Source: Haplodiscus bocki (lineage: Eukaryota). Taken from it: a DNA stretch of 64,000 bases. Below are positions 7,685 through 48,105 of the stretch, piece by piece. Below the pieces are notes generated by a model that saw only the letters and a list, made by a program, of their open reading frames with translations, made no database searches and was not told the origin of the DNA. The position numbers and the translations under genes are program-made. Location: assembly GCA_965655095.1 (NCBI GenBank), contig OZ296650.1, positions 134,168,001 through 134,232,000 of the forward strand, given 5' to 3'. Numbering within the stretch: the stretch's first letter is position 1; the number at the start of each line of letters is the position of its first letter.

Positions 7685-8288
7685 AACATCCGTCATTTCC
7701 GTCATGTTCTTCACGTCATATCCGTCATTTTTTTCGGCATTTTGACCGAAATTTTCTGACTAACCAAAACCAATTGCCCTTTCAGTTTTGGCTGCCTTTG
7801 CGAAGGCCAGCATACGAGAAATAGTTGTTTTTGGCGATCAAAAATGACGGAATGACGCTTTTTTGGCAAAATTCCGAAACTTTGTCAGCGCCTATCTCCT
7901 GAGCGAAAAGAGCTGGGCCAACAATTTTTGGCATGCAAATTGTTGAGATCATTTGTGCTTCACACACAAAATTTTGGCCAATTGTATCGGGTGGATGTGG
8001 AACTAGACCGATGAGAAATCAATTTTCAGGCAAAAAACACGATCATTGCGTCATAACTCATCACGTTGTGAATGGAAAAAGTTTTTTCCCTCCCTCCCTT
8101 TCTTACCTCGCCATTTTAGGACCGCATGCAAAATATGAATAAATTCTATCGGGTACGACCCGAGATCGGCTTCCCAGTCCTACCATGCGGTATGATGAAA
8201 TTTATCGATTAATATTTAACCTCGGCAACGGGACCCTACCCGGCCTCGGACTCTAAGAAGGTTACATCCCTGACCACCCAGCGGAGGC
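7685..8288 (+). repeat. Divergent (type 3) ~600-bp terminal module of element A
   Basis: CGTCAT cluster, TTTTGGCATGC...TGCTTCACAC, GATCATTGCGTCATAACTC, CGCATGCAAAA...GAGATCG, CGGG-ACCCTA-CCCG hairpin and core occur in the same order as in the type 1 and type 2 modules. Confidence 0.8.
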
Positions 8289-9036
8289 TAGGGTAACAAC
8301 TACCAGTGGAGGCTTTAGCGTATGTAAATTAGAAGAAAGTGTTTTAATTTCTTGAAGTCTTCACATAAGTATAATTATTATGATAGCGACAGCAAAAACC
8401 GTCTCGTTGGATTTAAATTTCCCATAGTTTGAAACATTTTTAGGAAATATATGGGAAAATCGTACAAAATGTATCGCCCATTTCGCTGTGAGTTGTTTAT
8501 GTTTTCCTTGCATGTAAAAAAAACTGTCTGAAGCTACTGCTACCAGTTTTGATTGTGCTCCAGCGATTACAATTGTATTTTTTGTTGCAGTATTTGAAAA
8601 AAACTTTGGTGAAAGAAAATAGTAAACCATATGAGAAAACTTCGTTGTCATCAGAAGCAGTTGATTGTGAGTGGTAAACTAATGTAAATTTTTACTCCAA
8701 ACTCGTAAAACTTCTAATGAAACAGAAAGTTGTTCGAAATGATAATTTTGTCAGATTGAGAAGTGAAAAACTTCAATAATATAATAATTCGAAGTACCAA
8801 TTTTGCATTACTTTATAACCGGAAGAGAATATGGTAATCAATTATTACACTAAATAACCGATTTGTATTGAGAACACAACTACGTATTCACAAAGATGCC
8901 GCTCAGTTTAAAGTAAAGAAAAATATGAGAAGAGTTCTAACAACCAACTAGTTGAAATCTCTTTTCAACCAATAATGTCCTCCAGTTACAACTACAAGAA
9001 ACTCAACAACAGGATTTTCCGAAATTTCACTGGAAA

Positions 9037-10035
9037 TTAATGTTGTACGTTCAACACATTAGGATTTGCATGCTGTAGAGGTGGTGGACCACCGCGTGGT
9101 TGTTCCGCTTCGCCAATGCCGTATTTCATGTTGTCAGGCACCTGAACTGCTGAGATCAAACAACAAACTCTGACGCGTTGAACTTCCTGTGTGATTGATT
9201 CGTCGCTCACACTACTTTTAACAAAACCAGAGACTCGCCATCCGCCGTTAGCATTGACGTGTTGAGAAACACGATCAATAGCCTCGCGCAATTCGCCTAC
9301 ATCGACAGAACTTGATGGGAGACGCAATAAATCGTTGGTACAGAAGAAGGACGCGACATGATGACTTTGAGTCATATCACCACTCAGCGGGTCATCGTCT
9401 TCATCATCAACATCTCGTGAGATTATTCGTGTCGACAGGGTCCACGACGAAACAGAACTTTTTTGAATGCAAGCACAAACGCTTTCATTCTTCGTCGATC
9501 TTCTGTCACAAAGAGTTCCCGAACAGGTTGGTGCCACCACAATTGAGTGCAAGAATGTCAGTGGCCTGTTTGTCAACGTATAATGGAACATTGCTGGAGT
9601 TGTTGGCGACGTGGAAATGGGTATGGGAGGGAAATCATTGTCATTTAAGTTATTCACAACTGTCAGTGGATGGTGAGTCTCCACGATGGGGTTATGCATG
9701 TCATTTCCCAGACAAGTGTTAGTGTACAGCGGCTCGACGACATCGACGATGGACCCCACCGTCAGATAACGATCAGAGAAAAGATTCGCTGACTTTTGAG
9801 CCGACTGTGAAATTACTACAAAACAATCCTTACAGTTCCACTGACCTATTATTGCCATTCGGTCGTAATTTCCTTCAGGGGAAGGCCTTTTAAGTTTAAG
9901 GGTTTGGGGCCGATAGAGCTGCAGTGGACGATCACTTCTTTTGAGCACAAGTACAATTCCTCGCAAGGTTGTATTCCCACTGATACGTAAAAAACCTTTC
10001 GAGGTCACCTGTGCCAGAGGCACTTGACGATTCAT
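9037..10035 (-). CDS. Conserved 332-aa accessory protein (ORF3), possible OB-fold/Zn-binding protein
   Basis: Intact ORF homologous over its length to 43388-44398 and 62641-63654 (RGIVLV..., YDR, CLGND..NPI, AMFH, PTCSG..CDRR...C.CIQKS, NGGW.V.GF). The function is inferred only. Confidence 0.85.
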   Translation of the reverse strand: MNRQVPLAQVTSKGFLRISGNTTLRGIVLVLKRSDRPLQLYRPQTLKLKRPSPEGNYDRMAIIGQWNCKDCFVVISQSAQKSANLFSDRYLTVGSIVDVVEPLYTNTCLGNDMHNPIVETHHPLTVVNNLNDNDFPPIPISTSPTTPAMFHYTLTNRPLTFLHSIVVAPTCSGTLCDRRSTKNESVCACIQKSSVSSWTLSTRIISRDVDDEDDDPLSGDMTQSHHVASFFCTNDLLRLPSSSVDVGELREAIDRVSQHVNANGGWRVSGFVKSSVSDESITQEVQRVRVCCLISAVQVPDNMKYGIGEAEQPRGGPPPLQHANPNVLNVQH

Positions 10036-11033
10036 ATCTTAAAAACGCGAAGTACTCAAATAATTATTCATAAATTAACTTGTGATGTTTAATATTTTAC
10101 TTTTCAAGTTTCAGCGACAGTCTGACCGTTAACTACTTTCAACTAGACAAAAAGTTTCGTTAACCAGACTAACTTTACAACGTAAACATACCTAAGATTG
10201 TGCTTTTTATGCATTCAATTCAAAGGCTTTTTTCAAAACACTCGAACTACCTGCGAGACAACAACGAAATCTAATGACTTCAAAGTGTTTTTCTTACTCC
10301 TGCTATCCAATTCAACAGACAACTATACGCTCAACTGCTCATCGATTATTGTCATCCAAGATTAAAAAGTGCTCGGATAATTATAATTAAATTTGATTTC
10401 CATTTTAAAAATGTAACAGTAATTAGTGGAGAAAAGTAAAAATTCCAAACGCACTCATTCATAATTTCTACAATTTCAGATGAAAACCTTCAACATTCTT
10501 AGAACAATTCAAGATATCGAAAACACAAAAGTTTGTTTCCGATAACAAAAGGTGCGGTGTTGAAACACCGACACCTCAACAACAATACATTAAGCAATAA
10601 AAAAGTCGATGAAAGTCTCCAATGAATGAAAGAAACACGTTCTTTTCAAGTAACGCAAGCGGTGAAGAACACCGACGAATCAAAGTTTCAGTTGGGAACG
10701 ACATAATTTTATGCGGTGATGGAGGTCAGCACACCACAGTAGAAATAAATTGAAATTTGAGGCTCCACAAGAGCTGTTGTTCAGTAACGGCTAATGAGAT
10801 AACCTAGCTACCTGATAAAAAAAAGAAACAAATGAATAAAATATAAAGGTAGAAAGCTTGTTTCCACGCTCCGCGCGGAAACAAGCAACCAATATCCGCA
10901 CCCAACAAAAAAAACCTATGCTTCTACAGTTAAAAGTATTTTTCTTTGATGCGGAACTGGAAACGTTTTTAACAGCTCTTAATATACGTCTTAAAGAGAC
11001 ACGTTGAAATGATTTCTCCATTCTCTTGTTAGG

Positions 11034-11678
11034 TCATTCCGAGCAATTGAATATCTTGCGACCAATGTCAAGAAAAACAATTGTTGAAGACAAAAAAAAA
11101 TGATAACTATCAAAACCACTAACCCTATTTTCCAAATTTCTTTTCCTGTTAACTGCTCGTTTTTGGGACAGAACAAAAAGACTCTCACAGAAGATTACTC
11201 GTGACACCATGTGAGCTTCTAAAATTGGATTTAAATGCAAATCATTGCCAGGTTGCAGCAGTTTCTTGTACCGTTGTGTGAGAATTGCTTTGATTTTGAT
11301 AAACGTGATACCAGCTGGGCAAAATGAAAGATCATCAGAAAGGTCGTGCGCACCACGACGAGGTAAATAGGTGAAGCCAATGACATTGTATTGAGTAAGA
11401 AGTCGTAACTTTTGAAAAAATTGATACGGGGTCAACGCTGGATTCTTCTTTGAAGAAAGACTGTTATTTACAGCATCATGCCACAAAATTATTTTGTTTG
11501 ATGTCGTTGGAATTTTATGTGTCCTCAAAAGCACTTCAATGTTTTTCTCTTCATTTGCATGATTTAAAGCCAAACCGGGAACGCTAAAAACTTTATTTTG
11601 TAAACCTTCGAACAGATGCGGTTTGTCATCCATTGCCCAGTACACAGACGAGGCTGCAACTATCAAATACTCATTCAT
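11034..11678 (-). CDS. Divergent SGNH/GDSL-fold hydrolase-like protein (214 aa, apparently intronless)
   Basis: Occupies the same slot as the SGNH genes of C and D. Block-like motifs YLIVAASS, SVPG, IILWHDAVNN and NDLHL occur in SGNH order. Confidence 0.6.
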   Translation of the reverse strand: MNEYLIVAASSVYWAMDDKPHLFEGLQNKVFSVPGLALNHANEEKNIEVLLRTHKIPTTSNKIILWHDAVNNSLSSKKNPALTPYQFFQKLRLLTQYNVIGFTYLPRRGAHDLSDDLSFCPAGITFIKIKAILTQRYKKLLQPGNDLHLNPILEAHMVSRVIFCESLFVLSQKRAVNRKRNLENRVSGFDSYHFFLSSTIVFLDIGRKIFNCSE

Positions 11679-12361
11679 TGTCCTGGAAAGCTCCTCCTTG
11701 TGTTAGTAATGAACCAAAAAAAGTTCGATTTCTAATCAAAGAAAAGAAGTTAATGAAATAGAAGATGCGTTTAGTAAACTTCAGGGCCCAGAAAACTGTG
11801 AAATGACAGAAGTTTTTATTACAAACACTTTGCAACTTTCACAACTGTTCTCCATTTAAGTATGAACAACTCAAATTTGTTGAAAAAACATTCCTTGGAA
11901 AAATAATTTTTTTATCATTTAACGTGCAACCACTAGTGCATTCAATCCCAACCAAAAACGATTGGACGCCTCTTCAATCCTCTATCGCCTTCATAAGGAA
12001 CTAGCAGTTTAAACAACATTCAATTGAAGTTTTTAATCGAGAATGATCAAAAGGCTATGGATAAAAAGTGTTTCTGATGTAATATACATACTGGCAATTC
12101 AAATAAAAAACAGTAAATGAATAATGGACAGAATGGTTTTCAAAGCTGAGAGAAGATAATAGGTTGCCGTGCAACCAAAGAAAACAATAGGTTTGCGGAA
12201 GTTTTTTGGAACTGCAAACATTTTGAAGAAATCAGCACGAAGTACACAATAAATACGAAGCGGATGGAAACTTTTCAAGAAAGGTTGCTGTGCAACCAAA
12301 AATTGACACCTATCAACAGAGTTAACATTCAGTGAAGAAGAAACGTTGACATTGATTGAGT

Positions 12362-15300
12362 TCAGTTTGTTCCGCCATATACAGACGTTTTCACAAGGCA
12401 TTCGCACCGCAACGACCCCTCTACGTTAGTACAACGATACAAATCAATTAACACGTCGCATTCGCTCAGATAGTCAGCAAGTTTCAGTTGCACAACGTTT
12501 CTTTTTCTGCGAGACATCGCTTTCTGCCAGGCCACTTCGAATGAAGACAAAGAATTTCCGGTTACATCAGCGAAGCCATGCACATAAGCAATTACTGTCC
12601 AGGGACGACGAGGTATGGGCTTTGTAAACTCACTTCCGCGCCCGGAATTGTGTTCATGAACACGCCGACGAAGATTTTTGCAGCGACCGACGTAAAACAA
12701 ATGAGGCAACTTCAAAGTCCTCAGCAAATAGCAGAAACTAAACGAAGTGTTAGGTATTTCGCTAAACCGCAAAGGAAACGGGCTTAATGTTTCTACAGAG
12801 CTCAGATTGCTTCTCATATCAGTGTAACTGTCCAGTAGGCTATTGATGAAAGGAAACGGATGGTTTTCCTTGAATAAAGTGTTGTCAATGCTTCTCATCG
12901 TGGCTAATCTGTCGCCCACGAAAGTAATATGGCTGAGATCTCTGACACGACTAAGGAGGACGTACAGTTGTTCTTTGACCCAAAACTTGAACTTTCGGGA
13001 ATCGGTTATTTCAGTTGCAATCATCGGGACAGTATCACCCATCACTTTGTGAACAGTAGACGCCACGTACATTTTTAAAGGAAACTGCCATCGCCGGCAA
13101 ACTGTGGAGGCGTTCAGCTTGAACAGGACACCCATTTGTCTCCTCAGTTTAACTTCTTGCCAATTCAATGAACTAACATTTGTAACTAGAGTAGATCTGA
13201 AACCTGGAGGATAGTGCCGCAGTATGTGTCAAAACTTTTTACAAAGCAAAGTTGTCCTTGCTGCAAATTTTCAGCTGGCAAATTACGGTTTAAGCGAAGC
13301 ACGGCACCTTCATGGACAAATAGTTGCTGGGGCTCCGTGCAAACACGGTTCAAGAAAAGAGAAGCTGTCACGTTAGCTGGAACCCAATTTTGAGTTCCAG
13401 AGGGAGTCATTTCGTCAACGGCAATGAAAGTTGTGTTCGAAACATTGCCACTACTTCGCACAGCCTCTATTCGTTCGTCAATTGCCTCCCGTTCAGCTAA
13501 CTGAGTGCTAAAAACTCGTAAACAATACATGGGAACTTCAGACCATGACCTCACAAAATTACAGTTCTGCTCAATTATTGTTAACACTTCATTTCGGATA
13601 GTTTCAGTGGACGGATACTGGGCAATTAGGTCGAGGATTCTTTGTCCGGTTATGTTGATCATTCGCACATACGATTTTAGGTGATAAAAAGTGAAACACG
13701 TCAACACGGTGTTACTGCGGAGTAAGAAAGTACCGGAAGGAGGTGGTAACTGACGGAAATCTCCACTACAAAACCAAAAATTTCCCACCAAAAGGAAGAC
13801 TGTTCCCACAAACACATTGCAATACAGAATCCATGGAAGACCACAATTCGGCTGAAACCATTGACACCTCTTCTATGAAAATAACATGAACTCTTTGTAA
13901 ATACTTGCATTTAACTGGATCCCTGCACAATTTTTCTAGGGGGCATATGAAGTCATCTGGGAAACCGATGCATTATCATTTACGGGAAACGGAATGAGAG
14001 CATTTATGTGCAAACCACCAAAAATTGAAGCCCTCTCAGCCGCCAGACTGGTAACCACACAATTGAAACCTTTTGCTAGGGTTTCAGCTATACAGTGAAT
14101 CAGAACATGACTTTTACCGGTTCCAGGTGGCCCAACAATCACTTGGTGCTTCACAAAAAATGAGGTACTCTTGTGAAATGTATTCATTGTCTCCAGAATC
14201 AACTGCAGTATTCGACGTTGATCGGACACAGATTCAATTGTCTGAAGTGTTTCTTGGTATTTTTGAGGCTGCCAATTCAAAGGACTGCTCAGAGAAGCCG
14301 ACATGAATTCATTGAAGGAAGGGAAAGTTGTCGGGCTTTTCTCCATTAAGGCTGCTACTAAGTTACTCTTCACTCTATTGCTTTCTTCTAAAACATGTTC
14401 CTCTGCTTTCTGGAAAATTGAGGACTCCAGAACAAGGGGTAAATCTTTGCAAAAGGTTAGAAGATTGTTTTGTGTAGCTTCCTTTAAACAGTGATACGCC
14501 GTTCCAACATGCCTGCCAAGAGGGTTGACGAACCGGGGTAAAACCGCAGTTGCTCCATCACAAAACGCTTAGTCAATGAAACAACTTCCTCATCGGTGGC
14601 TTCTTCAGTTGACGAAATCAGACCACTGTAGACGAATGCAGACTTCAAGGACAAATGGGAAAACAAACCAATTTCAGTGCAATACTCACCAAAGGAGAGA
14701 AGATAATGATTGAGAAAGTTTGATGTACTTTTAGGCACAATTGTTGATAAAACAACTTGCACTAGTGGAAAACTCATACTCTCGTTTATGAAGTGGGACT
14801 TGTTTGGTTTTCGTAAACATTCAAGTGCTTCCCTTGCTTGCCGGACATAATGACTGTTGTTGCTTTGGAAATTCTCACAGTAACTGATTAACGCTGTTAA
14901 ATAATGCATGTTGACTGTAACTTTGAAACCAAAACCGTCAATCCAAAACGAACAGAAAATATCTGGTTTTATCATCGTTTCAATGGACGCAGTTGGTGAC
15001 ACCTTGGTGCGGACGAACCAAGTGAAATATTTCTCTACAGTACGCAGGAACAACATTTCTGGAGGTCGTGCAGAAAAAACTGTTATTTTGTCATAAGACA
15101 CAGAACTTTTCTCAGCATCAACAATGGTCCATTCTTGTGTCTGTGTGAAAAGTCTATGAGAAGGGAGCTCAAGGTTTTTTCGCAGAAGAACTTGCTGACC
15201 ATACAAAGGACCCTGCTTAGCAGGACGTATCATCCGTTCTTTCACAATACCAGCTCTTTTCTCTTTGGGAGTTGTCACTACGTGAATGAAGTGAATGTTT

Positions 15301-18300: not shown

Positions 18301-20525
18301 TTGTAGATCTGGTCTGAAAAAAGAACACTGCGCCTCCGCTTTAACCAACAACTCCGACGCGCGCATCCAATTTCGCTTGGACGTTAAGGATATACTGCTC
18401 ATTCCAGAATAGTTACCAACAGCCTTGAGCAATTGGTATGTATGGCTCGAATAATTAGCCTTGACGTTTTTTATGAGGCGCAAAGTTGGCATAATTAAAG
18501 CTAACCTGTCTTCACAAGGCACGCTCAATCTTCCCAGTTGGGGATGTGTAGGTGGATGTAAAAACTGCAAATTTGAACCATTGTGGTGATCAAGACAAGT
18601 GCCAATAACAGGACCCTTGGAACAGTGAACGAAAGCGAAAGCGGAAACTTTGAATTTCTCCAGCACATTGAAGGGGGTGCTCCAATCAGATCTTATTCCA
18701 CGAAAATGAGAGTTAAATGACGACTTAAAGGACACGAAACTCGGCATCAGTCCATTGATGAGATGATGAAACGGAATGAAGCCAGTTTCCTCAACGAAAG
18801 TGAAACAACCGAAGGGATATCGACATTTGGGATAGGTTTCTTGATCCAGTGCTTTTTCCAACCGTTCAGAAGATCCCGAATTAACATGAGCATCGAAAAT
18901 TGACTTTCTCTGTGTTGTGTCGGACACCAACGAAGGAACATTTTGTTCACGTACGGCTGGATGTAGATGATTGAAACGATGCTTCCAACTTTGCCTGATC
19001 TCCGAAGGAATCATTGCATACAGAATTTTTACCTCATCATCCAAAATTGAAGTGTCATGAATGAGGCTACTTAAAACGGTGGGCCAAGCGTCTTTCCAAG
19101 CGACTCTGCTGCCCTGCAAATACCGTAGACAAACTTGGCAAACTTTTTGACCAACACGACATTTGCGCCCAAATTTTTTCCTCCGCCCGCTAACATTTTC
19201 CAAAACAAAGAAAAACAATTCGTAATACTTCGTCGATCTTCGCAAACAGTTGGCACATTCTAGGTGCCCAACAACAATCTGTGAATCACTATGAGAAGTG
19301 GTGTCGGAAAAAGCAACCGCTTCACAAGAGTCTACTGTGACTTCTGCTGAATCATTGTGTTGTGGTGAATTCTGCCGAAAAGTGGTCGTTGCAACAAATG
19401 AGGGAATGAAGTTAGATAACGCTGGCAGCGGTAAAGTTTCGAAATGTGCAGACGAGCTCCTGTTGTGTTTTTCCACTTCATGATTACTCAAATTTTGCCT
19501 TTTTGCAAAACTTGAAATTACGTCGAAATGATTTCCTGAAATACTGTGACGAACAAAAATCGACGGAATATCCAAAGCATTTCGGTCACCTTGATACTCA
19601 TAAACAAACCACGAAGAGGTCATACTGTGATAAACCACAACATCAACTCGAGCCAGCTGTGCAAATGTGAAAAGTTCAACGCACGTTCCAAATACACCAT
19701 CCGTACCCATGCGAGACACTTCCAAATAACTGATGACATTTCGACAGGAAATTGCTCTGACACCTGGCCCTCCAGGAACATAAGCTTCCAAAAATTGGCT
19801 TTGTAAGCCAACACTGGGTAAATGGTAGCAAATAGCAGCCCGTATGAAAGCATGGTTTGTTGCATGCGAACCGATAGCTACAGAAAGTGCAAAAAAAGGC
19901 AATTTCCGTCTCCTGGAACATCAACACAACTTCCAGGAACCAAATCTGACAATGGATGCTCATCAATCAAACTCGTTGGGAGAAACAAACCTTGAAAACT
20001 GACTCCCAGCTTATTGCAAACATGCTGTAGACTATGCTGACTTCCAATGATTTTTCTACCCTTCGAAATTACCGAATACAAATTTGCTTCCAACAATGGA
20101 TCAGCATCTGATGACAGCGGAGTTAATGTAACATTCGAAATATTCGCCAATTTTGGACTTTTCAAACACTTGCATTCCCCTTTCCCTTTGAAACAACCGC
20201 ACCACACACACTGCTCAGTCACATTGTGACGTCGCCTCTTCGTACCTGGGCCAGGATTCAATTCCAATCCTCCACGAAAAAGAGCTAACACAATAAGACG
20301 TCTAGTTAAGCTTGAATCGTTGCCACCACAAAATTGAAGCTGTCCTTGAACGCAACACGCCGATTGACCATTCCGGTAATTTCGTTTCTCAATGCAGAAA
20401 CCACCGAATAACGACACCGTGTAATTATGTGTCTGAGACAACGTTTGCAAACTTTTTTCACTTGAGAAAATTGATGTTGAACACCAAAAAAACAAAAGCA
20501 TTGTTAAACAACCGTAAAAATCCAT
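12362..20525 (-). pseudogene. Frameshifted OTU-Rep-PIF1 helicase-GIY-YIG polyprotein of element B
   Basis: Seven ORF pieces colinear with the intact C protein: PGDGNC (OTU), YFFTYTC, WYRYEFQDKTSAFPHIH, RYLAKY, GPPGTGKS, FIEEVSM (alternative frame near 13870), GDFRQLPP, QLYVLLSRV, CYLL...FYVG...RRVHEHN...RRPW...FEVAWQ. Confidence 0.9.
20247..20270 (-). other. 2A-like ribosome-skipping motif GLELNPG/P
   Basis: LIVLALFRGGLELNPGP; the ExNPGP core is in the same position as in element A. Confidence 0.7.
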
Positions 20526-38500: not shown

Positions 38501-40615
38501 GCTCTGTTAGTAAACAGCCTTTATTTCGCTGCTGCGCTACCGCCTGTGCTGGACAGAAGTGTCATTGAAGAATACGAAGAATCACTAGCAGTGCAAATCA
38601 GTATGGAAAAATGCAAAATGGTAGCTTTTCTTCACACTTGTCAGAAACAATTACCTACTGAGCAGGCGATGCTAGATGCAACCATCACCGTCCCTTTACC
38701 TTGGAAACCAGTCATTCAGAAAAGCCCGGATCAATGTCGAAACTCTTATACGGAACAGAAGAGTGTATTAAACAAACTGTTGAGTTCCATCGACATTTAT
38801 AAAGAAGGACTTTGCAGTTTCATCAGGCATCAAATTGTCTTTGGACCTCCAGGAAGTGGGAAAACTTTCGTTGTGCTAAAATCGCTTGCATATGCTTTAT
38901 GCCAAGGTCTCAACTGTGTAGTGACATCTTTGGCTGCTGAAAGATCTGCCGCTTTGGCTGGAAAACATCTGAATGCCCTCATCCCATTTCCAGTGGAAAA
39001 ACACGCTTCTGCAGAATCGCTCTCGAGAACAGCCCTGTCCAACCTACAACGATCTCCTATTAAGAGCCGCTTTCTGCAAAATCTACATGTTCTTTTCGTG
39101 GAGGAATTGTCAATGATTTCTAGCGAACTTTGGGCTGCCACGGATTATGTGCTTCAGGTTATCACAGCAAACTATGTTCCATTCGGTGGGAAACTTGTTA
39201 TTGCAACCGGAGATTTCTTCCAACTTCCTCCACCATCAGGATCTTGTTTGATGAGTTCTTCTTTTCCTCTCACAACGTTCACTTTTCTCAAACTGGAAAA
39301 TTTCGTTCGCATGCAAAACAAAAATGGCCAAGAACTGTTGTCTTTGTTGTCAGCGACTCCAAAAACTGACGGCAATGCGAGGCGTATCTGGGAAATTATC
39401 GGTAAAGGTTGCAATTTTGTCCATTCATGGAAAGACGTGCCGAATGATAGAATTCGAATTTTTGCCACTCGACAAGCAGAACGTAAAGCAACTGAAGACA
39501 AAATAATCGATGTTAAAAACAGCGGTACCCAATTTTATGAAAATGCGGCAATTGATGAAATGTGCGTTTCAAGCACTGACAACTGGACCGAGGCGTCGCC
39601 AAGTACATCAAAATTTCTCAACAAAAAGTGTCTTGAACCCCAGTCGTTGTTTCTGTACCCCGGAGCCATTTTACGACTAACAGTGAACATGCCATCTATA
39701 TCCGCGTATCAGGGTCAACTCTGTGTTCTGCTTTCTTTGGATACAATTCAGAATGGCTCTGTGACAATTGCTCTAGCACCAGCTGGTTGCCGAAGTATTC
39801 CACCGCTTGTTGTGATCAAAAACAAATGGCGTTGTGTTGTTATCGGCAAAGAAACTGGTGTTACCTACCGATTAAACCACAAAACGGTTTGCAGACGAAT
39901 CCAGTTTCCACTAAAATTATTTGTTGCGTCAACCATTCATAAGACAATGGGTGAAACGCTTCCGATGGTCGCAACCCAAATAGTTGGATCGAAAGACTTC
40001 GCTTTGTGGCTTCCCGAACAACTCTATGTTGTAATGAGTCGAGTAAGAAGTCTGAATCAGGTGACTTTTGTTGGATCGAAGGAATCTAACAAACGAGCAG
40101 TCTTGGATTTAGTCTGCAAAAATTCGCAATGGGCTGAACTCACGAATGAAATTTTGACTAAAAGTTCCGCTGGTGACCCTACAATTGATCATGCAAGAGC
40201 ATCTCCTTTTCCCCCTTCAATGAGAGAACTACCCGTTCAAAATGTGGGCTTCTGTTACTTGCTCCAAAGGGAACCACAGCAGCACCTTCTGTACATTGGC
40301 TCCACTATGTCGTTAGTGCGTCGTTTGCGAGAGCACAATGCAGGACTGGGTTCCTCCTTCACCAAGGTACAAAATCGTTTGCCCTGGATGGTTTGTGCTT
40401 ATGTTACTGGTTTCAATTCGATTAATGCTTCAGAGAGAATCCGAGCATTCGAGAAGGAGTGGCTGAATGCGGCAACACACTACGTCAACGCAAAAAAGAA
40501 AAATGTGTCACTTCCCACAGCTATCAATTTGGGGGAAATTGTCGCAAAAAATTGGCTATACAAAGAAGATGATTTGAAACTAGTAGTCTGCTGCAGGTCA
40601 TCAACTGTGTCTTGA
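32558..40615 (+). CDS. Rep/helicase polyprotein (~2685 aa): basic/CxxC N-terminus, OTU protease, Cys-rich and unknown domains, HUH Y2 Rep, PIF1-family helicase, SLX1-like GIY-YIG nuclease
   Basis: First ATG at 32558. OTU: GDGNCLF...NHF. Rep: YFVTYTC (~36638), YEWQEETAGFPHLH (~36875), RYVAKY (~37412). Helicase: GPPGSGKT, FVEELSM, GDFFQLPP, QFPLKLFVASTIHK, QLYVVMSRV. GIY-YIG: FCYLL...LYIGST...RRLREHN...PW...FEKEW. Confidence 0.95.
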   Translation: MSKQNNKGNLKRRRCTSCGQFVGEHHVCAKSIELELQVNEPLGILYKIPDASVAVSPTARTEIHSSLNTLGLMDFLKPTKTAIGNDTVICSMQPVRVTAVLGDGNCLFSSLAVALGLSHECGPIIRNIIVSHMNLISFPPNSLQTSVYSDDFPNQHRVLSCTSVDEYLRESRMAENGVFGSCVEIYSFCQIFKVDVFLYHVPFKSWMIYECSSNVNRKGIFIPQNRNANHFEVITELVSIGPESSSLSQVASINRPPSQSSETNHWSQALQNCEGTETEPASKKSKVNSDYTWEEHPDPLALSLFANSVSTKMKKLSALETLSTNSTNLPKNDCSQMLEPPCFDFSPTDSVSGNMHTNGECPNLGGCDCCAKCMRQSTVLYPLKLKRKNKFDLKNRVFGNKLTEPIVVLCKLCLLYCTTESYDWYNAWPSVFFSLLSDQDMPVRTQMDILSLLPWELRQQWMTSMHYFPLCVQRCLSRKRIAGKCSVDGTLRLRRFHELMKTLKQTNIALALDNEPYPNVRCPYGCWCFIEESGWIPANHFINLFERNFTSFQSSSFLHLRGIRSDFLTPFVSLRQFLVATTVRVDEKAGLVVQACSRHSRGSSVQYFHPPSHPSLVRTTVNYEERLSAIAPTLSFISSIKANFASHTYQLLRSVGSYSGMSTVRLKRKTRWDFTSDILYHAEGVACHFREDIKTMIREWVRQGKILDDVASGMLDHVPDKKKVNSCLSQATSIDLQTCLNLTKIVEMNEKEYLNNVKSLSCYTLVHGNDDYGCSPPPLENRVSIVSWIVQAAVCVSPILCRSLVNSSKYSVTLRPLFTLLRKVLLGTARMNTAKVLWLVRKSEQAVSAVIEQTNTDDKTEGTTDCCCFVGARFLSEICDTIQHVPLNKRKNIGSATTEQVSYNMTHAIFTTGSPKNLRNKVKPPLTLIISDNEFELIAVGTKDGSSKGEPRWLVRHGGRFQGFWLIEKSKKFATKTEGSPTDALETFIRGYWTIAIYQKSRNVQLIDLKWKFLSTLTGQGIFICAHHTIPLTRDFRNSGFQCRCNRASFLRCPHLQCYSCVCKRLFNEGLQQQHRRILIDSVPLEKLNKTNSPSLVSESSSSRDFIEPNSMPANEPIQPDAAAETLDIASSNSSSVSYIVHPETNDEEFEDDNLRIMATLKTNSDEKLISVDLERKEDAFKLPLHILLNSQCNLLYRRNGNPISLSLKEKRFLENISAVSTSALPLIQPEALLFPSIFWCQASSGSFPGAIPTALYNSSKYNKQLGFAGLDDMLRTRIKDGSLLTSCNPTYLQYVFDCLLNMQLHKSDIRIILNRGWQEVNSVPHNCSFLSTQTFKFDCAESRKNVCELAALITDKNPTYFVTYTCSQSTHPGIRKIFEALHEMYPAETTPKEVLAAAIQAELMPMLRSWYRASQYVMEWVKNSPEEPLGPVSHIWMRYEWQEETAGFPHLHAILCTPEDKFSDDVRSRVCCSKQTFLGGLEVSCPELNAVERFQLGKLYQKYQTHNCSKGRKRCHKKTDRLDKPICRVPKYPPSNCFSFKEIPVNFSCETMGLLREMELADIDENSLFPKVKDPLTAGKHHYPTVSNEHYSPTNAALFALTQSSTNVQICDDYMAPRYVAKYAAGIESRAVAKIVAGETENSVKVLTEPIAHEKIAGVQASQKKMRGDEKQKSVTGRVVSITECLWWSLQLPYVCTNVDFVHVPTVPKENRSGIITEKRFSNKIKLGATFMEGIRVRKHVLQLPKHRQFTRTQSFLLADVENSSISPDKVTVFGLRPPELLFVSKLKNYYSWFVRCKPQTKKSISNHEVFLKRSFRRSCWVDALGYLVKLRPCSVDAFVNFCRANGTDGRDGILKREMRIHIVPLLVTKKASQFVAHWKQLSEEDAVVVFSNVLPNNPTKFLLHVLLTNGEFDTEMDILNVQSFKEAFTTAKIIPSCNINAKTVQNLTRNYLLKQLSFVPGSSKLIDKYLLMAHSVLSEALLVNSLYFAAALPPVLDRSVIEEYEESLAVQISMEKCKMVAFLHTCQKQLPTEQAMLDATITVPLPWKPVIQKSPDQCRNSYTEQKSVLNKLLSSIDIYKEGLCSFIRHQIVFGPPGSGKTFVVLKSLAYALCQGLNCVVTSLAAERSAALAGKHLNALIPFPVEKHASAESLSRTALSNLQRSPIKSRFLQNLHVLFVEELSMISSELWAATDYVLQVITANYVPFGGKLVIATGDFFQLPPPSGSCLMSSSFPLTTFTFLKLENFVRMQNKNGQELLSLLSATPKTDGNARRIWEIIGKGCNFVHSWKDVPNDRIRIFATRQAERKATEDKIIDVKNSGTQFYENAAIDEMCVSSTDNWTEASPSTSKFLNKKCLEPQSLFLYPGAILRLTVNMPSISAYQGQLCVLLSLDTIQNGSVTIALAPAGCRSIPPLVVIKNKWRCVVIGKETGVTYRLNHKTVCRRIQFPLKLFVASTIHKTMGETLPMVATQIVGSKDFALWLPEQLYVVMSRVRSLNQVTFVGSKESNKRAVLDLVCKNSQWAELTNEILTKSSAGDPTIDHARASPFPPSMRELPVQNVGFCYLLQREPQQHLLYIGSTMSLVRRLREHNAGLGSSFTKVQNRLPWMVCAYVTGFNSINASERIRAFEKEWLNAATHYVNAKKKNVSLPTAINLGEIVAKNWLYKEDDLKLVVCCRSSTVS

Positions 40616-41192
40616 AAAGTCGTACTTTAGGAGAAAGCTGCCCAAAAACTTATGGATTAGTTTGAGATAATTGTTTTACTTGCACACAAACTTCCTTGCC
40701 TTGACAGCCATACGCATCGACTGCATAGTGATGCAATGGTGAATTTCTCTTTATGTTATGCTGCAACCGCATCGGCTGCAGAGTGATGTACCAAGTAGCA
40801 CGTGCAGCAACATCAACCTTTTTGCTGGAAAATATAATGCCTCGACTGCATAGTGTTGCATTATCTATTTTGCAGTTGAGATGATTTGTTGCTAATCACT
40901 TGTCTGTGTCTGTTTAATTCATTAGTTTGATGGGATTCACTTTCACTGAACCTGATTTGATGGACTTTGATTTTGGAAGCACTAGAAAGAGTCCATTTAA
41001 AAAAGCGCCGTTAATTTTGGACAATAGAAATCAGCTAACTTTCAAGTTTTTTCGGGAAAAAAATATAATCATACGTTAAATGACGAATTTTGACATTGTT
41101 GATTGAAGCACTCTTGTTACTGTATCCCCGTATTCGGGGATGATACCTGAAGCTGCAGAAACCGACGTTTTTCACAGTGCTTCCAGATCATT

Positions 41193-41945
41193 ATGGCTCA
41201 TTTGATCATAACCGACTCTCTGGGCGTACAACTGGAAGGTGTGCTTGAAAATTTGGCAGTTAAAAGTTTTCCTGGCGCCAGAGCGGCGGACCGACGTGTA
41301 ACGAGTTTCCTGGAAAATTTGCGGCGCCGCTTCCAATCCATTACAATTTTCATTGGAGGGAATGGCCTTTCCAATTGGGGCCGGCGTCCAGCTGAAAGTC
41401 CAGAACAGGTAAAGCTTAAGTGATGGTTCATGGGGTTACTGTTTGCAAAATCAAATTAGACGCTAGTAAAATTTGGAACGTTTTTGTGTATTGTTAAACC
41501 CTTTATTGAAGTACGTTTAGTAAAAATCTAGGAAAACGTTGTTTTCAATATTAAGTCTTTCTACTGGTACTTTAACTGGTGCTACTTGCAAACTATAATT
41601 GAACCGTAACTTTGTGTTTTTAATGTCTCAACAGTACTTCATTTGCTTTTGTTGTTTTATTATTAGGTGTTCCATGATATCTTGAACCTTGTGAGAATTG
41701 CCGAGAGAAAATGCGACAAAGTATACTGCCTGGGCTTAGTAATGCGAAGCCGACCGTGCTTCCTTGCAGTGAAAGAAATAAACCGAATGCTGCGAACATC
41801 CATTGGACACTACACTTACGTTTCCGTGTCATCTAAGATGTCATCTGAAAGAAATCTTAAAGACGGAGTGCATCTGTCTCAGCACGGCGTGACGAACATC
41901 CTGTGGATTATAAAAAGACGGATTTTAGGTAACAAATGTGTCTAG
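41193..41945 (+). CDS. Two-exon SGNH hydrolase (exons 41193-41408 and 41667-41945; 164 aa)
   Basis: Blocks TDSLG, FPGA and IGGNG are in exon 1 and DGVHL is in exon 2. The phase-0 intron 41409-41666 (CAG/GTAAAG...TTATTAG/) is at the same codon as in element D. Confidence 0.88.
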
Positions 41946-43387
41946 CAGTACATTAAGATGTTGAAAAACAGTATTGATTCCAGTAACTTGCGGTTGATAT
42001 CAACTTTCCAGCAATTGAATGTTTCTAGCTTTAAACTCTTTGGAATTTACCTATAGAAGGTTTACGTTTTTTCCATAAACTTCCATTCTAACACCAATGT
42101 CGTTTAGGACACTCAATCAGGAGACTCTCCCATCGCAAAAACCGCTACGTCCACTGGAAGTGGTGAAGATCCGGCCCTGTGTTGTTGTAGGCTTCATTTG
42201 GACATTTCTGGAAAATGGAATTACAATCTTGGTCGTTGCACCTATGTTTCGAATACTCTTGGTAGTTTTTTCATGATGACACAATTTTGAAACTTTTTTT
42301 GGTGGTACCATTAAAAACAAACAAAGGTGCTTTTTTGGTTTCCAATAATCTTGGCCAATTGACGCCGCTAACAGTGTTTTAATTTTGTTTTCGTGTCCTC
42401 TTCGATTTGTAATTTGTCAGTGATAAAATTGTAAAAAAGCTCGACCGCATGGTGGCCTCTACTTCTTTGAAGTTTTGAATTTTTTTTGTTCCACACACCT
42501 TGCATTTTGGCGTACATTACAACATATTTATTATTTTAAACTTTGTCTTCATGCCTCATTCAATTTAAAGTTGGTTTGTGATGACGTTGTAAGGAGTTCA
42601 ACCGCATGGTGATCTGTACCTCTTTGAATTTTTGATGCTTCGTTGTCATTGGAACATTTTTTTAATGGTCGCCGTCCGCTATTAGTCGTCACAATTCCTT
42701 CATGTTTTCGCTGAAATAGTGTACTCCATAGTTACATTGTTTGTTAAAAACTTTTGGTAGTTTAAAATTTCGAAAGTGATCAACTAACCTCGGCCATACT
42801 GTTACAAGGATTGTTCATATTATTTTGAATAAAGTTTTCTTTTGAAATGTTTGTTCTTATATTCGCAAAAAACGTTATAGCAAACATTGTGCAGCTTTGA
42901 GCTCGTATTAAACTTCAGTTGTCGAACATCTGCAATGAAGATATAATTTATAATCCTTAACTTTCTACAAGTTTTGTAGACAGGAAAAAAACCGATGTAA
43001 TAACGATGTATTTGAATGCATTGCTCACCATTTTTTTTCTTTTGCCTTGAGTGTTACTGATCGATAAAGCGTGATGCGTTGAACAGTAAGATAACTGTAA
43101 ATGTAACATAACATTTCGATGAAATAAACTTAATGATAAAGAAGATTTGAGAAATGTGAATAATTGAGAAACTTGTCATGCTTTTTTGAAAAACAGGTTG
43201 CTTTACTTGAAGCAATAGCGCTAATTCACTGGATTAAATGCTTGAAACCAAAATTACTTGCCTGTTGACTTCATTGAACCTTATAGGAAAATGCGTTCAC
43301 AGAATCTTTAAAAAAGGAAAAAGCATGGTTTTGAATGTTCCAATTGTTCAATTCTCAGGCAGCTTCAACCACGTTTGATTTCAGACT

Positions 43388-44398
43388 ATGACAACTCAAG
43401 TGAACACCTCCCAAGTAACAGCACCAAATTTTTTGCGACGAAGCGAAAATACATTCGTCAGAGGTATCGTTCTAGTAATTAAGAAATACGACAAACCTTT
43501 GCAGTTGTTTAGACCGCAAAATATCAAAAACAAGAGAGGTGCCCTCGATACCAGCTATGATCGATTAGTCATACTAGGCGAGATCAATTCAAAAGAATGC
43601 TTTGCTGTGATTGCGGAGTCTGCACAGAAAAGCTATTTTTTGTTCGGGGACACTCTGTTAACAGTAGGGTCAATTGTGGACGTAAAAGAACCTGTGTTCT
43701 CGAACTCTTGTCTCGGCAATGACCGCAGTAATCCAATTTTTCATGTCTTTCTTCCTTTGGAAGTCGTGGTTAACAATATTCCATTGTTGCCAATTCCCAT
43801 AGATCTCCACCCATCAACGACAGCAATGTTTCACTTTTGCTTGCCAAACAGACCCCTCACCTTCTTACAAGCAGGTGCTGTAGCTCCAACTTGCTCAGGC
43901 TTCATGTGTGACAGACGAGAAAAACGAATTGACTCTGTATGCCCCTGTATACAGAAATCTCCCGTTTCAGCTTGGGTAATGTGCGCCCGAATTGTCAGTC
44001 GTGACATCGAAAATGAAGACGAAGATTCCCTCACGGGAGAAATGATACAAAGTCTTAACCTGACAAAACTATTTTGCAGCGAAGCAATTATTAGAAGTTC
44101 ATATGCATCAATCGATTCGCAACAACTGCGGATTGCTGTTAACCAGGTGTCCCAATTTGTAAATGAGAATGGTGGTTGGCAGGTATGTGGATTTTACAAA
44201 AGTGGATCCACAGACGAAAATCTTGCACAAAACGTACAACGTGTCCGCATTTGCAAAATTACGCCTGCCGTTGAAGTGCCTTTTAACTTGAAATACAACA
44301 TTGTGCCATGCAACGCCAATATTGGCAATGAGCCCCCAGCTTTGCAACATGCGAATACTAACGTCGGTGCTCCTAACAATCCGAACAACGTACGATAG
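43388..44398 (+). CDS. Conserved 336-aa accessory protein (ORF3), possible OB-fold/Zn-binding protein
   Basis: Intact, full-length homologue of 9037-10035 and 62641-63654. Confidence 0.87.
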   Translation: MTTQVNTSQVTAPNFLRRSENTFVRGIVLVIKKYDKPLQLFRPQNIKNKRGALDTSYDRLVILGEINSKECFAVIAESAQKSYFLFGDTLLTVGSIVDVKEPVFSNSCLGNDRSNPIFHVFLPLEVVVNNIPLLPIPIDLHPSTTAMFHFCLPNRPLTFLQAGAVAPTCSGFMCDRREKRIDSVCPCIQKSPVSAWVMCARIVSRDIENEDEDSLTGEMIQSLNLTKLFCSEAIIRSSYASIDSQQLRIAVNQVSQFVNENGGWQVCGFYKSGSTDENLAQNVQRVRICKITPAVEVPFNLKYNIVPCNANIGNEPPALQHANTNVGAPNNPNNVR

Positions 44399-45419
44399 CT
44401 GATCTAGACTTACTCCTCAGATGACCGTTCTTTCTCCACCGCATGAACTGCTTGCTGGTTTTCAAAACCAATCTCTCCTTTCGCAATCGACCGCAAGGTG
44501 GTTGCTGAAAAAAACATGCACAAATTAACAAGTTTCGGAAAAAAAGTCAACTGATAAAGTTGTCCTCGTTCTTTCATACCACAATTTGTTCTCCTCCTTT
44601 TCAATCTTGAAACCTATGCTTCAATTTTCTTGTTAATGATAAAGTTTAACTTCCCAGTACTTATCAGTACCCAAAGGTTAATTGTTGGTTTTTGTGGAAC
44701 TGTAAACACTAATGTCAAATTACAAATTAGTTGTTGTTGAACAATGGAAATTAGTTTGCAACTGCCGACGACTTGTCTCTGTAAACCTACGTTTTTCAGT
44801 AGCTTAGAACATTGTGCTAATTCGTGTGGCTTTTGAGTGTGGTTTATTGGTTCGTGTAGAAGTTGTGAACTTTTTATGTTATGCAATTAACTTCTTTCTT
44901 GTTATGTTAAACATTACTATCCGTTCATGACCGAACGTTTTGAACTTTGAAACGCTGGCTTGCTCTTCTATCGGTCGAAGTGCACGCTCTCAGTTCGTTG
45001 CTTGACGTTTGATACAGTGTTGTAATTTTCGCTAACAGAAGAATGGGATCAAACTTTCATACGAAATTTTAGGGAAATTTTTTTCTGAAGTCCATACAGG
45101 TTCATTTGGTTCATTCGGGTTGTTTTCACAAAGTAACAGCTGGGAACCTACTGCCTACAAATTGACAACATTGATGCGAAACTTTTTGAGAAAGTTAAAA
45201 CACTTTCGCTGGTCAAATTTTGAAAGTATTCGTTCGGACAAAAATTTTAGTTTTCCTTCCCAGAAACTCATCAAACTTGAAGTTGTTTGTTAAAGGAACA
45301 GTTGCTCTCCGAGAATTGCGGGCAAAAATTCCTGCCGACGTTTCACCATACGCCTGTTTAAGTGTTATATTCAAATTCTACAGCAAAAATTGATTTTTTT
45401 CTGATTTTGTTTTTTTTTC

Positions 45420-46011
45420 CAAAAAATTCGTCATAACCGTCATTTTTTTCGGCAAAGTGGCCGAAACTTTTTCATCTTCGGAAAATTGCCTTTGAAGTTA
45501 TGGAGTCGATTTCATACTGGAGCCACTCCAGAGGGCAAACTATGCACTTCAATGTGGGAGCTATGACGAAATGGTCGATTTTCGGCATTTTTTTCCAACT
45601 TTGATCCGTCATATCTCAACACCTATGACGATTTGGTAGAAAATTTTTTGCATGTGTGTAGCCCTTAGTTATACTGCTTCACACGAAAAGTTTCGGCCAA
45701 ATGCATGTGGTTCCTTGCAGGGCTGTCGGTAAAAAACTGCAAAATGAGGCCAAAAAACAGAATCATCTCGTCATAATTCCCCAACCATTTTTGCTAGAAT
45801 GATCTAACTTGCACCATTGTTCTTAGAATTGAAAGTTATGCCCGCATGCAAAGTTTGATCAAAATCGTATGGGTGGGAGCTGAGATCGTTATTTTCCTAT
45901 ACCGTATTTGCATAGAGTTATTTCTTATATTTTAACGCGAGGCAAAGGGGCCCCTCCCCCGCCTCGCCAGGACCTATGAGGGGCGTAATCCCGTGACCAC
46001 CCAGTGGAGGC
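45420..46011 (+). repeat. Type 2 terminal module of element C
   Basis: Nearly identical by eye to ~28390-28976, ~46470-47059 and ~47515-48105. Confidence 0.9.
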
Positions 46012-48105
46012 ACCGGTGAAAATCACCAGGTGGCGGTCACTGGAGAAGCACCTCTGAAATATGATATATTACTGATAGTCTTTTCTTCGAACACAGTAAT
46101 GAGTTTTGCAAATGCCTGTTTAATACATTGAAATTGAGCCTGTGAAATCTTCATTGAAATCGACAGGACATCAAGGACGAAGCTTGCACAAAGTTGGGCC
46201 CCGTTGTTTCTCCGTGTCGCTTCGCTAATCTACGAAACAACGGGGCGGGGCATTTAACAATTTGAATTTCGAATTTTTTTTTTTCAATTTTGGGCCAAAT
46301 TATGATTGTTTTTCCAGAAAATTTCAATACTTCAACCCACAAAAAAAGTTAAAAATCAGAAAAACTATGGAGTAAGAAAAATTAGGGGGGAAAACTGGAC
46401 AAAACATTTGCCAGATATGAATTCTACAATCAAAACCGAGGTTTTGGAAATTTTTAATTTTTTTTTCGAAAATTTCGTCATAACCGTCATTTCTTTCGGC
46501 AAAGTGGCCGAAAATTTTTCATCTTCGAAAAATTGCCTTTCAAGTTATGGAGTCGATTTCATACTGGAGCCACTCCAGAGGGCAAACTATGCACTTCAAT
46601 GTGGGAGCTATGACGACTTGGTCGATTTTCGGCATTTTTTTCCAACTTTGATCCGTCATATCTCAACACCTATGACGAGTTGGTAGAAAATTTTTTGCAT
46701 GCGTGTAGCCCTTAGTTATTCTGCTTCACACGAAAAGTTTCGGCCAAATGCACGTGGTTACTTGCAGGGCTGTTGGTAAAAAACTGCAAAATGTGGCCAA
46801 AAAACAGAATCATCCCGTCATAATTCCCCAAGCATTTTTGCTAGAATGATCTAACTTGCACCACTGTTCATAGATTTGTAAACTATGCCTGCATGCAAAG
46901 TTTGAGCGAAATCGTATGGGTGGGAGCTGAGATCGCGAATTCCCTATACCGTATGTGCGTATTTGTTATTTCTTATATTTTAACGCGAGGCAAAGGGGCC
47001 CCTCCCCCGCCTCGCGAGGACCTATGTGGGGCGCAATCCCCTGACCACCCAGTGGAGGCACCGGTGAAAATCACCAGGTGGCGGTCACTGGAGAAGCACC
47101 TCTAAAATATGAAATATTACTGATAGTCTTTTCTTCGAACACATTAATGAGTTTTGCAAATGCCTGTTTAATACATTGAAATTGAGCCTGTGAAATCTTC
47201 ATTGAAAACGACAGGACATTGAAGGCGAAGCTTCCAAACAGTTGGGCCCCGTTGTTTCTCCGTGGAGCTTCGCTAATCTCCGAAACAACGGGGCGGGGCA
47301 ATTAACAAATTGAATTTCGAATTTTTTTTTTCAATTTTGGGCCAAATTATGATTGTTTTTCCAGAAAATTTCAATACTTCAACCCACAAAAAAGGTTAAA
47401 ATTCAAAAAAACTATGCAGTAAGAAAATTTTGGGGGAAAATTGGACAAAACAATTGCCATATATGAATTCTACAATCAAAACTGAGTTCTTGGAAATTTT
47501 TAATTTTTTTTTCGAAAATTTCGTCATAACCGTCATTTCTTTCGGCAAAGTGGCCGAAAATTTGTCATCTTCGGAAAATTGCCTTTCAAGTTATGGAGTT
47601 GATTTCATACTGGAGCCACTGCAGAGGGCAAACTATGCACTTCAATGTGGGAGCTATGACGAAATGGTCGATTTTCGGCATTTTTTTCCAAATTTGATCC
47701 GTCATATCTCAACACCTATGACGAGTTGGTAAAAAATTTTTTGCATGTGTGTAGCCCTTAGTTATTCTGCTTCACACGAAAACTTTCGGCCAAATGCATG
47801 TGGTTACTTGCAGGGCTGTCGGTAAAAAACTGGAAAATGAGGCCAAAAAACAGAATCATCCCATCATAATTCCCCAACCATTTTTGCTAGAATGATCAAA
47901 CTTGTGCCATTGTTCTTAGAATTAAAAGTTATGCCCGCATGCAAAGTTTGATCCAAATCGTATGGGTGGGAGCTGAGATCGTTAATTCCCTATACCGTTT
48001 GTGCATATTTGTTTTTTCTTATATTTTAACGCGAGGCAAAGGGGCCCCTCCCCCGCCTCGCGAGGACCTATGTGGGGCGCAATCCCCTGACCACCCAGTG
48101 GAGGC
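46012..48105 (+). repeat. Two tandem type 2 non-autonomous mini-units (1048 and 1046 bp)
   Basis: Cores start at 45995, 47043 and 48089. Confidence 0.92.

Follow-up and report, generated by a model that had tools for sequence, protein, structure and literature searches.

A 64,000-nucleotide stretch of the Haplodiscus bocki genome (contig OZ296650.1, positions 134,168,001 to 134,232,000 of the forward strand; hereafter the window) is one continuous head-to-tail array of Helitron-like rolling-circle transposons and their non-coding derivatives of about 1 kb, which we call minis. The units meet at a 17-nt core. Its pattern, GACCACCCAGYGGAGGC, matches 12 times in the window at up to two mismatches, every time on the plus strand, and not once in 100 shuffled controls. 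Successive cores are spaced by 13,330 bp, six times by 1,050-1,057 bp, and then by 1,041, 17,035, 1,048 and 1,046 bp. The array therefore holds one complete unit of 13,330 bp (T1), one of 17,035 bp (T2) and nine of 1,041-1,057 bp (minis m1 to m9). The window start and the window end each fall within a further long unit (T3 and T4), and the array extends over at least 64 kb. No non-element DNA separates the units and no runs of N occur in the window, whose G+C content is 40%. A covariance model of the 3' end, R1, recovers exactly these 12 ends and no extra ones, and hidden unit boundaries are therefore absent from the window. The initial annotation of this DNA had placed 12 boundaries at the core, in one orientation and with no host DNA between units, and our search returned the same coordinates.

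Identity matrices of the sequence on either side of the cores divide the units into families. The 150 nt upstream fall into three families, A (core at 8272), B (21602-27919) and C (28960-48089), with 90-100% identity inside a family and about 70% across families. The 150 nt downstream fall into five (a to e), about 60% identical to one another. Six junction types occur in the window, A|a, B|b, B|c, C|c, C|d and C|e. As had been proposed, the family changes exactly at the core at 8272 (A|a), 27919 (B|c), 28960 (C|d) and 48089 (C|e); at 27919 the upstream side is 100% identical to family B and the downstream side 98% identical to family c. Autonomous and mini units of diverged families are thus joined head to tail at one point, also as first described. 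Some neighbours are nearly the same: m3 and m4 are 98-99% identical over 150 nt on either side of their joints, and m1m2 and m5m6 are 95.7% identical. A self-comparison also shows a four-unit higher-order repeat.

We considered 38 junctions from the window and ten related loci (L001, L002, L003, L005, L033, L035, L076, L131, L133 and L134) from at least three other metagenomes. L002/L131/L135, L005, L133 and L134 all come from one metagenome, ERZ25074608, and L003 and L132 were grouped. All 38 junctions join unit to unit and none joins host DNA. At least 13 heterotypic combinations of a 3' family with a 5' family occur, all switching at one nucleotide position; those outside the window include D|d in L001, A|j and D|k in L003, X|e in L035 and X|c in L076. 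A T2-type unit lies downstream of family C in the window and of family D in L001, and the two copies are 95.5% identical over 17.3 kb, so that the unit keeps its own 5'/3' pairing while its neighbours differ. A T4-type unit follows C in the window and in L033, and X in L035. Type-2 minis follow B, C or X, and 3' family A stands before a in the window and before j in L003. In ERZ25074608 taken alone, four different 3' families precede the 5' family CCGGGGAGCG.., and three different 5' families come after 3' family E. Since the same 5' family follows different 3' families, read-through of a single element cannot produce the pattern. Unit order is thus polymorphic across samples and within one genome, as the initial annotation had expected. 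Its argument against simple read-through stands for single elements and needs qualifying elsewhere, for local duplication or read-through contributes at m3/m4 and in the four-unit repeat. That neighbours differ between and within genomes suggests that these elements insert at the ends of one another and not at dispersed positions.

What the core is can be read from its conservation. Across 26 aligned junctions (alignment A4) only CC.CC.AG is invariant, and distant relatives keep only CCACC-YAG, with a variable 5' side. The 5' side is YGGAGGC in the window families, L133 and L134. In L002 the sequence directly after CCACCTAG changes unit by unit, and only 8 nt are common across the joint. Judged by these alignments, the 17-nt core is made up of one unit's conserved 3' terminus (..GACCACC-YAG) directly followed by the 5' terminus of its neighbour, and is not a separate attachment site. 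A Helitron circle joint is the same kind of 3'-to-5' terminus junction (PMC5876387). The shared core first described is confirmed in the window, and what has to be given up is its standing as a site of its own. Two joint classes account for all but one of the 38 junctions: CCACC-CAG|YGGAGG (28) and CCACC-TAG|other (9). Among 3' family E copies with at least 30 nt of identity upstream, position -3 is either C or T, matching the downstream partner. Because this base follows the downstream partner, a joint between CCACC and YAG is favored; two Rep specificity groups would also explain the two classes. The sole variant core in the window is that of the T1|m1 joint (21602-21618, GACCCCCCAG). In families a and b, 24 nt in from the 5' end, the joint is present a second time in degenerate form, ACCAG(T/A)GGAGGC (8299-8313 and 21629-21643).

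The long units encode a giant Rep-helicase, RepHel. In T2 it occupies an uninterrupted open reading frame (ORF) at 32546-40615, with the first ATG at 32558, and has Pfam matches to Helitron_like_N, PIF1 and GIY-YIG (the last at E 1.4e-8), along with a weak match to OTU. From the N-terminus, the order is a zinc-finger-like region, OTU (DGNCLF), HUH (FPHLHA), the two-tyrosine motif (YVAKYAAG), the Walker A of a Pif1-type helicase (GPPGSGKT) and a C-terminal GIY-YIG domain. The OTU, HUH, two-tyrosine and Walker A motifs and the GIY...YIG pair are kept in the closest relatives, which we found only in metagenome assemblies. Against the PDB, the helicase region matches Pif1 helicases and, weakly, Helraiser (7LCC), and SLX1 is the closest match to the GIY-YIG domain (E 4.6e-7). 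One polypeptide thus combines HUH, two catalytic tyrosines (YxxxY) and a superfamily 1B Pif1-type helicase, as Helitron-like elements (HLEs) do. The units also lack the inverted repeats of cut-and-paste elements and target-site duplications, and a hairpin-like palindrome, with weak thermodynamic support, precedes the 3' end: no inverted repeats flanking units and no duplicated bases at joints were found. That the elements are Helitron-like, as the initial annotation implied, is near certain.

Canonical Helitrons (HLE1) have 5'-TC ... CTRR-3' termini and insert between host A and T. Here the 5' ends are YGGAGGC or other sequences, never TC, and the 3' ends, CCAG or CTAG, are only partly like CTRR. 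Helentrons carry a C-terminal apurinic/apyrimidinic (AP) endonuclease, insert within TT, and have T-runs at their boundaries and subterminal inverted repeats. Like Helentrons and other HLE2, the long units have a giant Rep-helicase that bears an OTU protease N-terminally and an endonuclease C-terminally, and like the HINE/DINE-1 elements of that group the minis are short non-coding partners that share only ends. However, RepHel gave no match to AP endonuclease, and its C-terminal domain is the SLX1-like GIY-YIG. There are no T-runs at any of the 38 junctions and no visible TT target, the 3' end is ..CCACC-YAG, the coding block is antisense to the ends in one clade, and so far copies are seen only in arrays. 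A 6-nt inverted match, GGAGGC / GCCTCG, lies at HINE-like distances and is too short to score. The coding part of the long units is Helentron-like in architecture with a different nuclease. A GIY-YIG domain in HLE2 has one report, in a Sphagnum family (PMC11417382).

A second gene, ORF2, is conserved in T1, T4 and all related loci, where its Cys4 pattern does not vary, and its family comprises 501 representative clusters in a library of 1.84 billion proteins. By sequence it has no Pfam match and no match in the PDB. An early structural model from 7 sequences was poor (predicted local distance difference test, pLDDT, 39), while one from a 66-sequence alignment reached pLDDT 90 and contains two OB folds; its best fold matches are RPA, Teb1, CST and SSB proteins. 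According to this model, ORF2 is predicted to be an RPA-like protein that binds single-stranded DNA and has two OB folds plus a Cys4 zinc ribbon. RPA-like accessory genes occur in the Helitrons of plants, cnidarians and fish (PMC6431247). Between RepHel and ORF2 lie two small ORFs in T2 and L002, kept in T4, that bear GDS(L)-like and DGxH-like motifs. The L002 copy has a weak match to DUF459 (E 0.0065), the sole support from a domain search, and together these features suggest a split SGNH-type hydrolase. The coding capacity amounts to RepHel, ORF2 and the two small ORFs, and none of the main ORFs contains an integrase or recombinase domain.

The units differ in condition and in the direction of their genes. 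T2 appears intact and autonomous from its reading frames. The RepHel frame of T4 is intact except for a single in-frame TGA at 57225-57227, and the RepHel genes of T1 and T3 are fragmented into several pieces. The RepHel and ORF2 coding block runs antisense to the termini in T1, T3, L132, L133, L134 and probably L005, and sense in T2, T4, L001, L002 and L003. In a RepHel tree that contains relatives of this family only, with no HLE1 or HLE2 references, the sense elements form one clade (Shimodaira-Hasegawa-like approximate likelihood ratio test, SH-aLRT, 99), and T1, T3, L132 and the RepHels of L133 and L134 (P0010, P0008) form the other (SH-aLRT 100). Orientation tracks the RepHel clades, which makes it a lineage trait. 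As an alternative, inverted repeats able to invert the coding block were looked for, and none were found. Both orientation lineages share one core. In one genome the RepHel proteins are only about 45% identical, yet the 17-nt joint is 100% identical, which suggests either mobilization in trans by one active Rep or exchange of ends. The 5' regions of T2 and T4, about 3.5 kb each (28970-32545 and 48099-51524), are AT-rich and without long ORFs; they are unrelated to each other past the first 40 nt, and each is kept within its own family (L001 and L035, respectively).

The nine minis are of two types, m1-m6 and m7-m9, which align over their full length at only about 60% identity. What the long units have in common with the minis is the 40-57 nt directly following the core and a 3' module, about 570-620 nt long, that begins with CGTCATAACCGTCAT. 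Modules of different families are homologous at about 70% identity, and that of T1 is 95-98% identical to those of the type-1 minis. ORFs in the module are too short to serve as search handles. Toward its end lie an imperfect, GC-rich palindrome (GCGAGGC..GGGG-loop-CCCC..GCCTCGC) whose loop contains CCC and, some 11 nt ahead of the 3' end, a short second palindrome whose stem varies by family; both are present in all families of the 26-junction alignment. Pairing holds in 72% of cells when the register is correct and in 43-61% when it is slid as a control, and covariation is modest. The terminal hairpins are plausible but not proven. The hexamers CGTCAT/ATGACG occur at 12.9 per kb in 3' modules and 0.27 per kb elsewhere (48-fold), at constant distances from the end. 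They are specific to the window families and scarce or absent in minis of other genomes; they could be iteron-like protein-binding sites or half sites resembling a cAMP response element (CRE). About 200 nt into every mini of both types, and not in long units, is a two-tier palindrome (z down to -5.3), with one compensatory stem change in m3/m4. Mini length stays within 1,033-1,081 bp across three genomes despite 41-67% sequence likeness. The minis contain no ORFs of note. Rfam gave no match in the window at gathering thresholds and none in the minis at E<=1, thus no hammerhead/retrozyme or small-RNA family, and ARAGORN found no tRNA. The coordinates of all features are collected in Table 1.

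Table 1. Units, joints, genes and repeats of the array, in window positions unless a related locus is named.
Feature	Position	Strand	Description
Core starts	8272, 21602 (1 mismatch), 22659, 23712, 24763, 25813, 26866, 27919, 28960, 45995, 47043, 48089	+	12 matches to the core pattern
Joint T3/T1	8272..8288	+	GACCACC-CAG 3' terminus, then (T/C)GGAGGC 5' terminus; same composition at the other eleven joints
Unit T3	1..8281	+	Long, cut by window start; RepHel remnants 408-6700 on minus strand, at least 4 pieces; 3' module 7714-8281, family A
Unit T1	8282..21611	+	13,330 bp; 5' end family a; 3' module 21015-21611, family B
T1 ORF2	9037-10035	minus	RPA-like
T1 RepHel remnants	12362-20525	minus	At least 6 pieces
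Type-1 minis m1-m6	21612..27928	+	1,050-1,057 bp each; non-coding; 5' family b; 3' module family B; palindrome near +200
m1-m6 internal joints	after 22668, 23721, 24772, 25822, 26875		
Type-2 mini m7	27929..28969	+	1,041 bp; 5' family c, 3' family C
Unit T2	28970..46004	+	17,035 bp; 5' family d; 3' module 45429-46004, family C
T2 RepHel	32558..40615	+	About 2,685 aa from first ATG
T2 small ORFs	41193-41423, 41667-41945		Between RepHel and ORF2
T2 ORF2	43388..44398	+	336 aa
Example 3' module	45429..46004	+	CGTCAT/ATGACG hexamers at fixed positions, GC-rich imperfect hairpin, short second hairpin, ends GACCACCCAG
Type-2 mini m8	46005-47052	+	
Type-2 mini m9	47053-48098	+	
Unit T4	48099..64000	+	Cut by window end; 5' family e; RepHel 51525-59666 (+); ORF2 62623-63654
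CGTCAT/ATGACG-bearing stretches, examples	45429-45780, 21015-21410, 7691-8055		
Mini-only palindrome, example	21808..21854	+	CCCGTTGTT..AACAACGGG with inner stem
Mini palindrome sites	21808-21854, 22866-22912, 26021-26067, 27073-27119, 28124-28168, 46200-46244, 47248-47292		
L002 ORF2	7420-8433		
L002 small ORFs	18881-19108, 19261-19533		Between RepHel and ORF2
Minis elsewhere	L003 4811-5862; L002 21997-24145; L133 2102-4172; L134 6726-8807		

The related loci came from several searches. When JGI contigs were scanned for the core, three of the first 120 matches listed were true loci, the rest being chance 17-mers, and four core matches in viral contigs were all chance. Two of the three true loci are from Ga0126343, a metagenome of the coral Cyphastrea sp. 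(preprint 10.1101/391565). Eukaryotic genes, for example a CAP-Gly gene, adjoin the array on the L002 contig; that array is at least 32 kb long and reaches no edge rightward. L134 repeats a long unit plus two minis with a period of about 21 kb. L003 contains a composite at 1636-4810, a mini fused without the joint motif to a 5'-truncated T3-like 3' fragment, and a block of T3-like 3' fragment plus mini is present there twice (1-2626 and 3135-5801) at 85% identity.

How could diverged families come to share one joint? We lean, with a little more confidence than doubt, toward Rep-mediated joining at the ends of resident elements as the process that builds mixed-family arrays. The Rep would cut one strand at the ..CCACC-YAG motif and so start and end the transfer of a unit. 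A chromosomal joint of a 3' end and a 5' end would be chemically the same substrate as a Helitron circle joint; the Helraiser transposase cleaves the joint of its right and left terminal sequences (RTS-LTS) precisely on the plus strand, and double-stranded circles bearing the joint are donors (PMC5876387). A resident joint or 3' end would then be the preferred place of ligation, crosswise, for an incoming unit or circle. Each insertion would regenerate the motif, and arrays would grow and families mix. Runs of adjacent units may move together, and local duplication may add near-identical neighbors. As guesses from homology, the RPA-like protein might coat the displaced strand and the SLX1-like GIY-YIG domain might nick or resolve a duplex or branched target. 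With the variable 5' ends of L002, the upstream cleavage motif could perhaps be supplied by the neighbor, as in IS608. Both IS91 and IS608 insert beside short specific motifs (PMC10288648, PMC5876387). Targeting of resident ends is a proposal that we prefer over read-through alone, which fits poorly.

Several observations weigh against joining at resident ends. Among the loci examined there was no circle, no empty site and no host junction, and at no array edge was the terminus intact. Two more distant RepHel copies that stand alone (L004, L006) have no recognizable ends within 10 kb by motif, BLAST or covariance model, and by the same means one end of the L005 element was not found. Sampling was biased to junctions, since the metagenome scan used the full core, which detects joints only, and the other loci were reached via RepHel genes. 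Two candidates remain for the exact cut position, between CCACC and YAG or after AG, and the two junction classes, CAG|YGGAGG and TAG|other, are not accounted for. The folding energy of the terminal hairpin is no better than that of shuffles (z -1.1 to +0.7). Finally, the near-identical m3/m4 and the four-unit repeat show that plain duplication also builds the array.

Two expectations of the initial annotation met the same absence. It had predicted circles closed at the core, and none were found: the one candidate, L001 (17.3 kb, with a core near both ends), has two flanks that differ in family and is a fragment of an array. It had also predicted a single host junction at the array ends, and contig walks (L002 to the right twice, L003 to the left) found no array edge or host junction, the arrays continuing. 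The sole array edge, on the left side of L002, is formed by a decayed unit truncated at its 5' end; the 3' end of this unit has no motif and lies directly against the RepHel start codon, and the edge is uninformative on the target.

Ordinary Helitron tandem arrays, produced by read-through or integration of a concatemer of one composite and followed by unequal crossing-over and divergence, would need no end targeting at all. Both tandem arrays and head-to-tail joints have been described for Helitrons of plants, bat and Bombyx (PMC4067079, PMC5876387, PMC11934779). The m3/m4 pair, the m1m2 and m5m6 repeat and the 21-kb repeat of L134 speak for this account, and they do show that plain duplication or co-mobilization of runs also occurs. 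As a full explanation we nevertheless consider it unlikely, because the heterotypic combinations switch at the same nucleotide position, one unit family has differing upstream neighbors within a genome and across samples, and at 60-70% likeness the families flanking a joint are too dissimilar for homologous exchange to fall always at one point. Exchange between arrays by homologous or microhomology recombination in the conserved termini, with Rep specificity irrelevant, would draw on the likeness of the 3' modules across families and on the identity of the core over 17 nt, and mosaic minis such as m5 point to gene conversion or recombination inside units. However, the switch point is invariant over the 38 junctions though the homologous module is about 600 nt long, and the L002 joint offers just 8 shared nucleotides; we regard this account as improbable.

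Lower still we would place the idea that the 1.05-kb repeat is a host satellite into which long elements inserted site-specifically in either orientation. It would accommodate a coding block found in both orientations relative to the core and the constant length of the minis, and site-specific Helitrons do exist, at the telomere repeats of Paramecium (PMC13085455). But the long units' own family-specific 5' ends and 3' modules travel along between samples (T2/L001, T3/L003-L132), about 400 nt of mini including the palindrome would have to be lost at every such insertion, no inverted termini flank the coding block, and orientation follows the RepHel phylogeny rather than changing insertion by insertion. 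That the array is a collapsed or chimeric assembly is hardly credible. Repeat-rich regions are prone to such error; here the units differ by 2-15% from each other, and three other metagenomes, in contigs of long-read style, as well as JGI contigs from short reads show this architecture again. Arrays of the same kind in independent contigs argue against mis-assembly.

Compared with known systems, canonical Helitron arrays (maize and Arabidopsis centromeric, Myotis, Bombyx, cnidarian subtelomeric) have the same precise, filler-free 3'-to-5' joints, consistent with rolling-circle chemistry. They have been described chiefly as concatemers of a single element, whereas here diverged autonomous and mini families alternate and neighbors are combinatorial. 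Distantly related Helitrons directly adjoining each other have been noted in bat and maize (PMC4067079), and cnidarian subtelomeric Helitron-like arrays have been described (PMC11934779). The Paramecium Helitrons are alike in having a sequence-specific target and a dedicated genomic compartment, but they target a host repeat (C4A2), while the apparent target here is another element's end. Satellites and defective DNAs of geminiviruses and nanoviruses are likewise non-coding partners of about 1 kb that share only the Rep origin with their helper, and their recombination breakpoints lie at the nick site. Unlike the present elements, those viruses are episomal and encapsidated; here there is no capsid gene and the arrays are chromosomal.

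The initial annotation had compared the array to an integron-like landing pad. Integrons do resemble it in their one-orientation arrays of unrelated units at a short core split between neighbors. They differ in having a tyrosine recombinase, one fixed promoter platform and promoterless gene cassettes, none of which is present here; the main ORFs lack an integrase, there is no attI, and the units are transposons and their parasites. The comparison therefore survives as an analogy only. Nearer analogues in mechanism may be IS91/IS608 and the RTS-LTS cleavage of Helraiser. IS91/ISCR and IS200/IS605 (IS608) would share single-strand HUH chemistry without target duplication, and IS91 and IS608 insert in a specific orientation beside a motif related to their own cleavage site, which sets up the next insertion. 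The likeness would be one of mechanism only, as these elements are bacterial, small and without a fused helicase or nuclease.

New here are an OTU-Rep-Pif1-GIY-YIG lineage of 13-21 kb with an RPA-like ORF and constant-size minis, its defined termini, and evidence for the shuffling of diverged families at a single joint, host DNA being absent from all 38 junctions. Read conservatively, this documents a little-described Helentron-like lineage with ends defined well enough for annotation, and an RPA-like ORF family that lacks a Pfam model. A bolder version, tentative and in our judgment doubtful, is that these are the first eukaryotic rolling-circle transposons with a near-exclusive target, the end joint of a resident copy. 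The HUH Rep would then act as a sequence-specific single-strand recombinase between circle and chromosome, building self-contained 'safe-haven' arrays of one orientation, where diverged autonomous lineages would be shuffled, in the way of cassettes, with size-constrained satellites of 1.04 kb, and the two joint classes would be two Rep specificities. If true, a class of transposon thought to use two-base targets would have a long, specific and self-renewing one, and in an animal nucleus an HUH enzyme with a helicase, a single-strand-binding partner and a nuclease would join DNA at a site of about 8-17 nt. It would explain the origin of Helitron-derived arrays, subtelomeric blocks and satellites in cnidarians and elsewhere, and would be a natural case of a parasite that confines itself to a harmless compartment.

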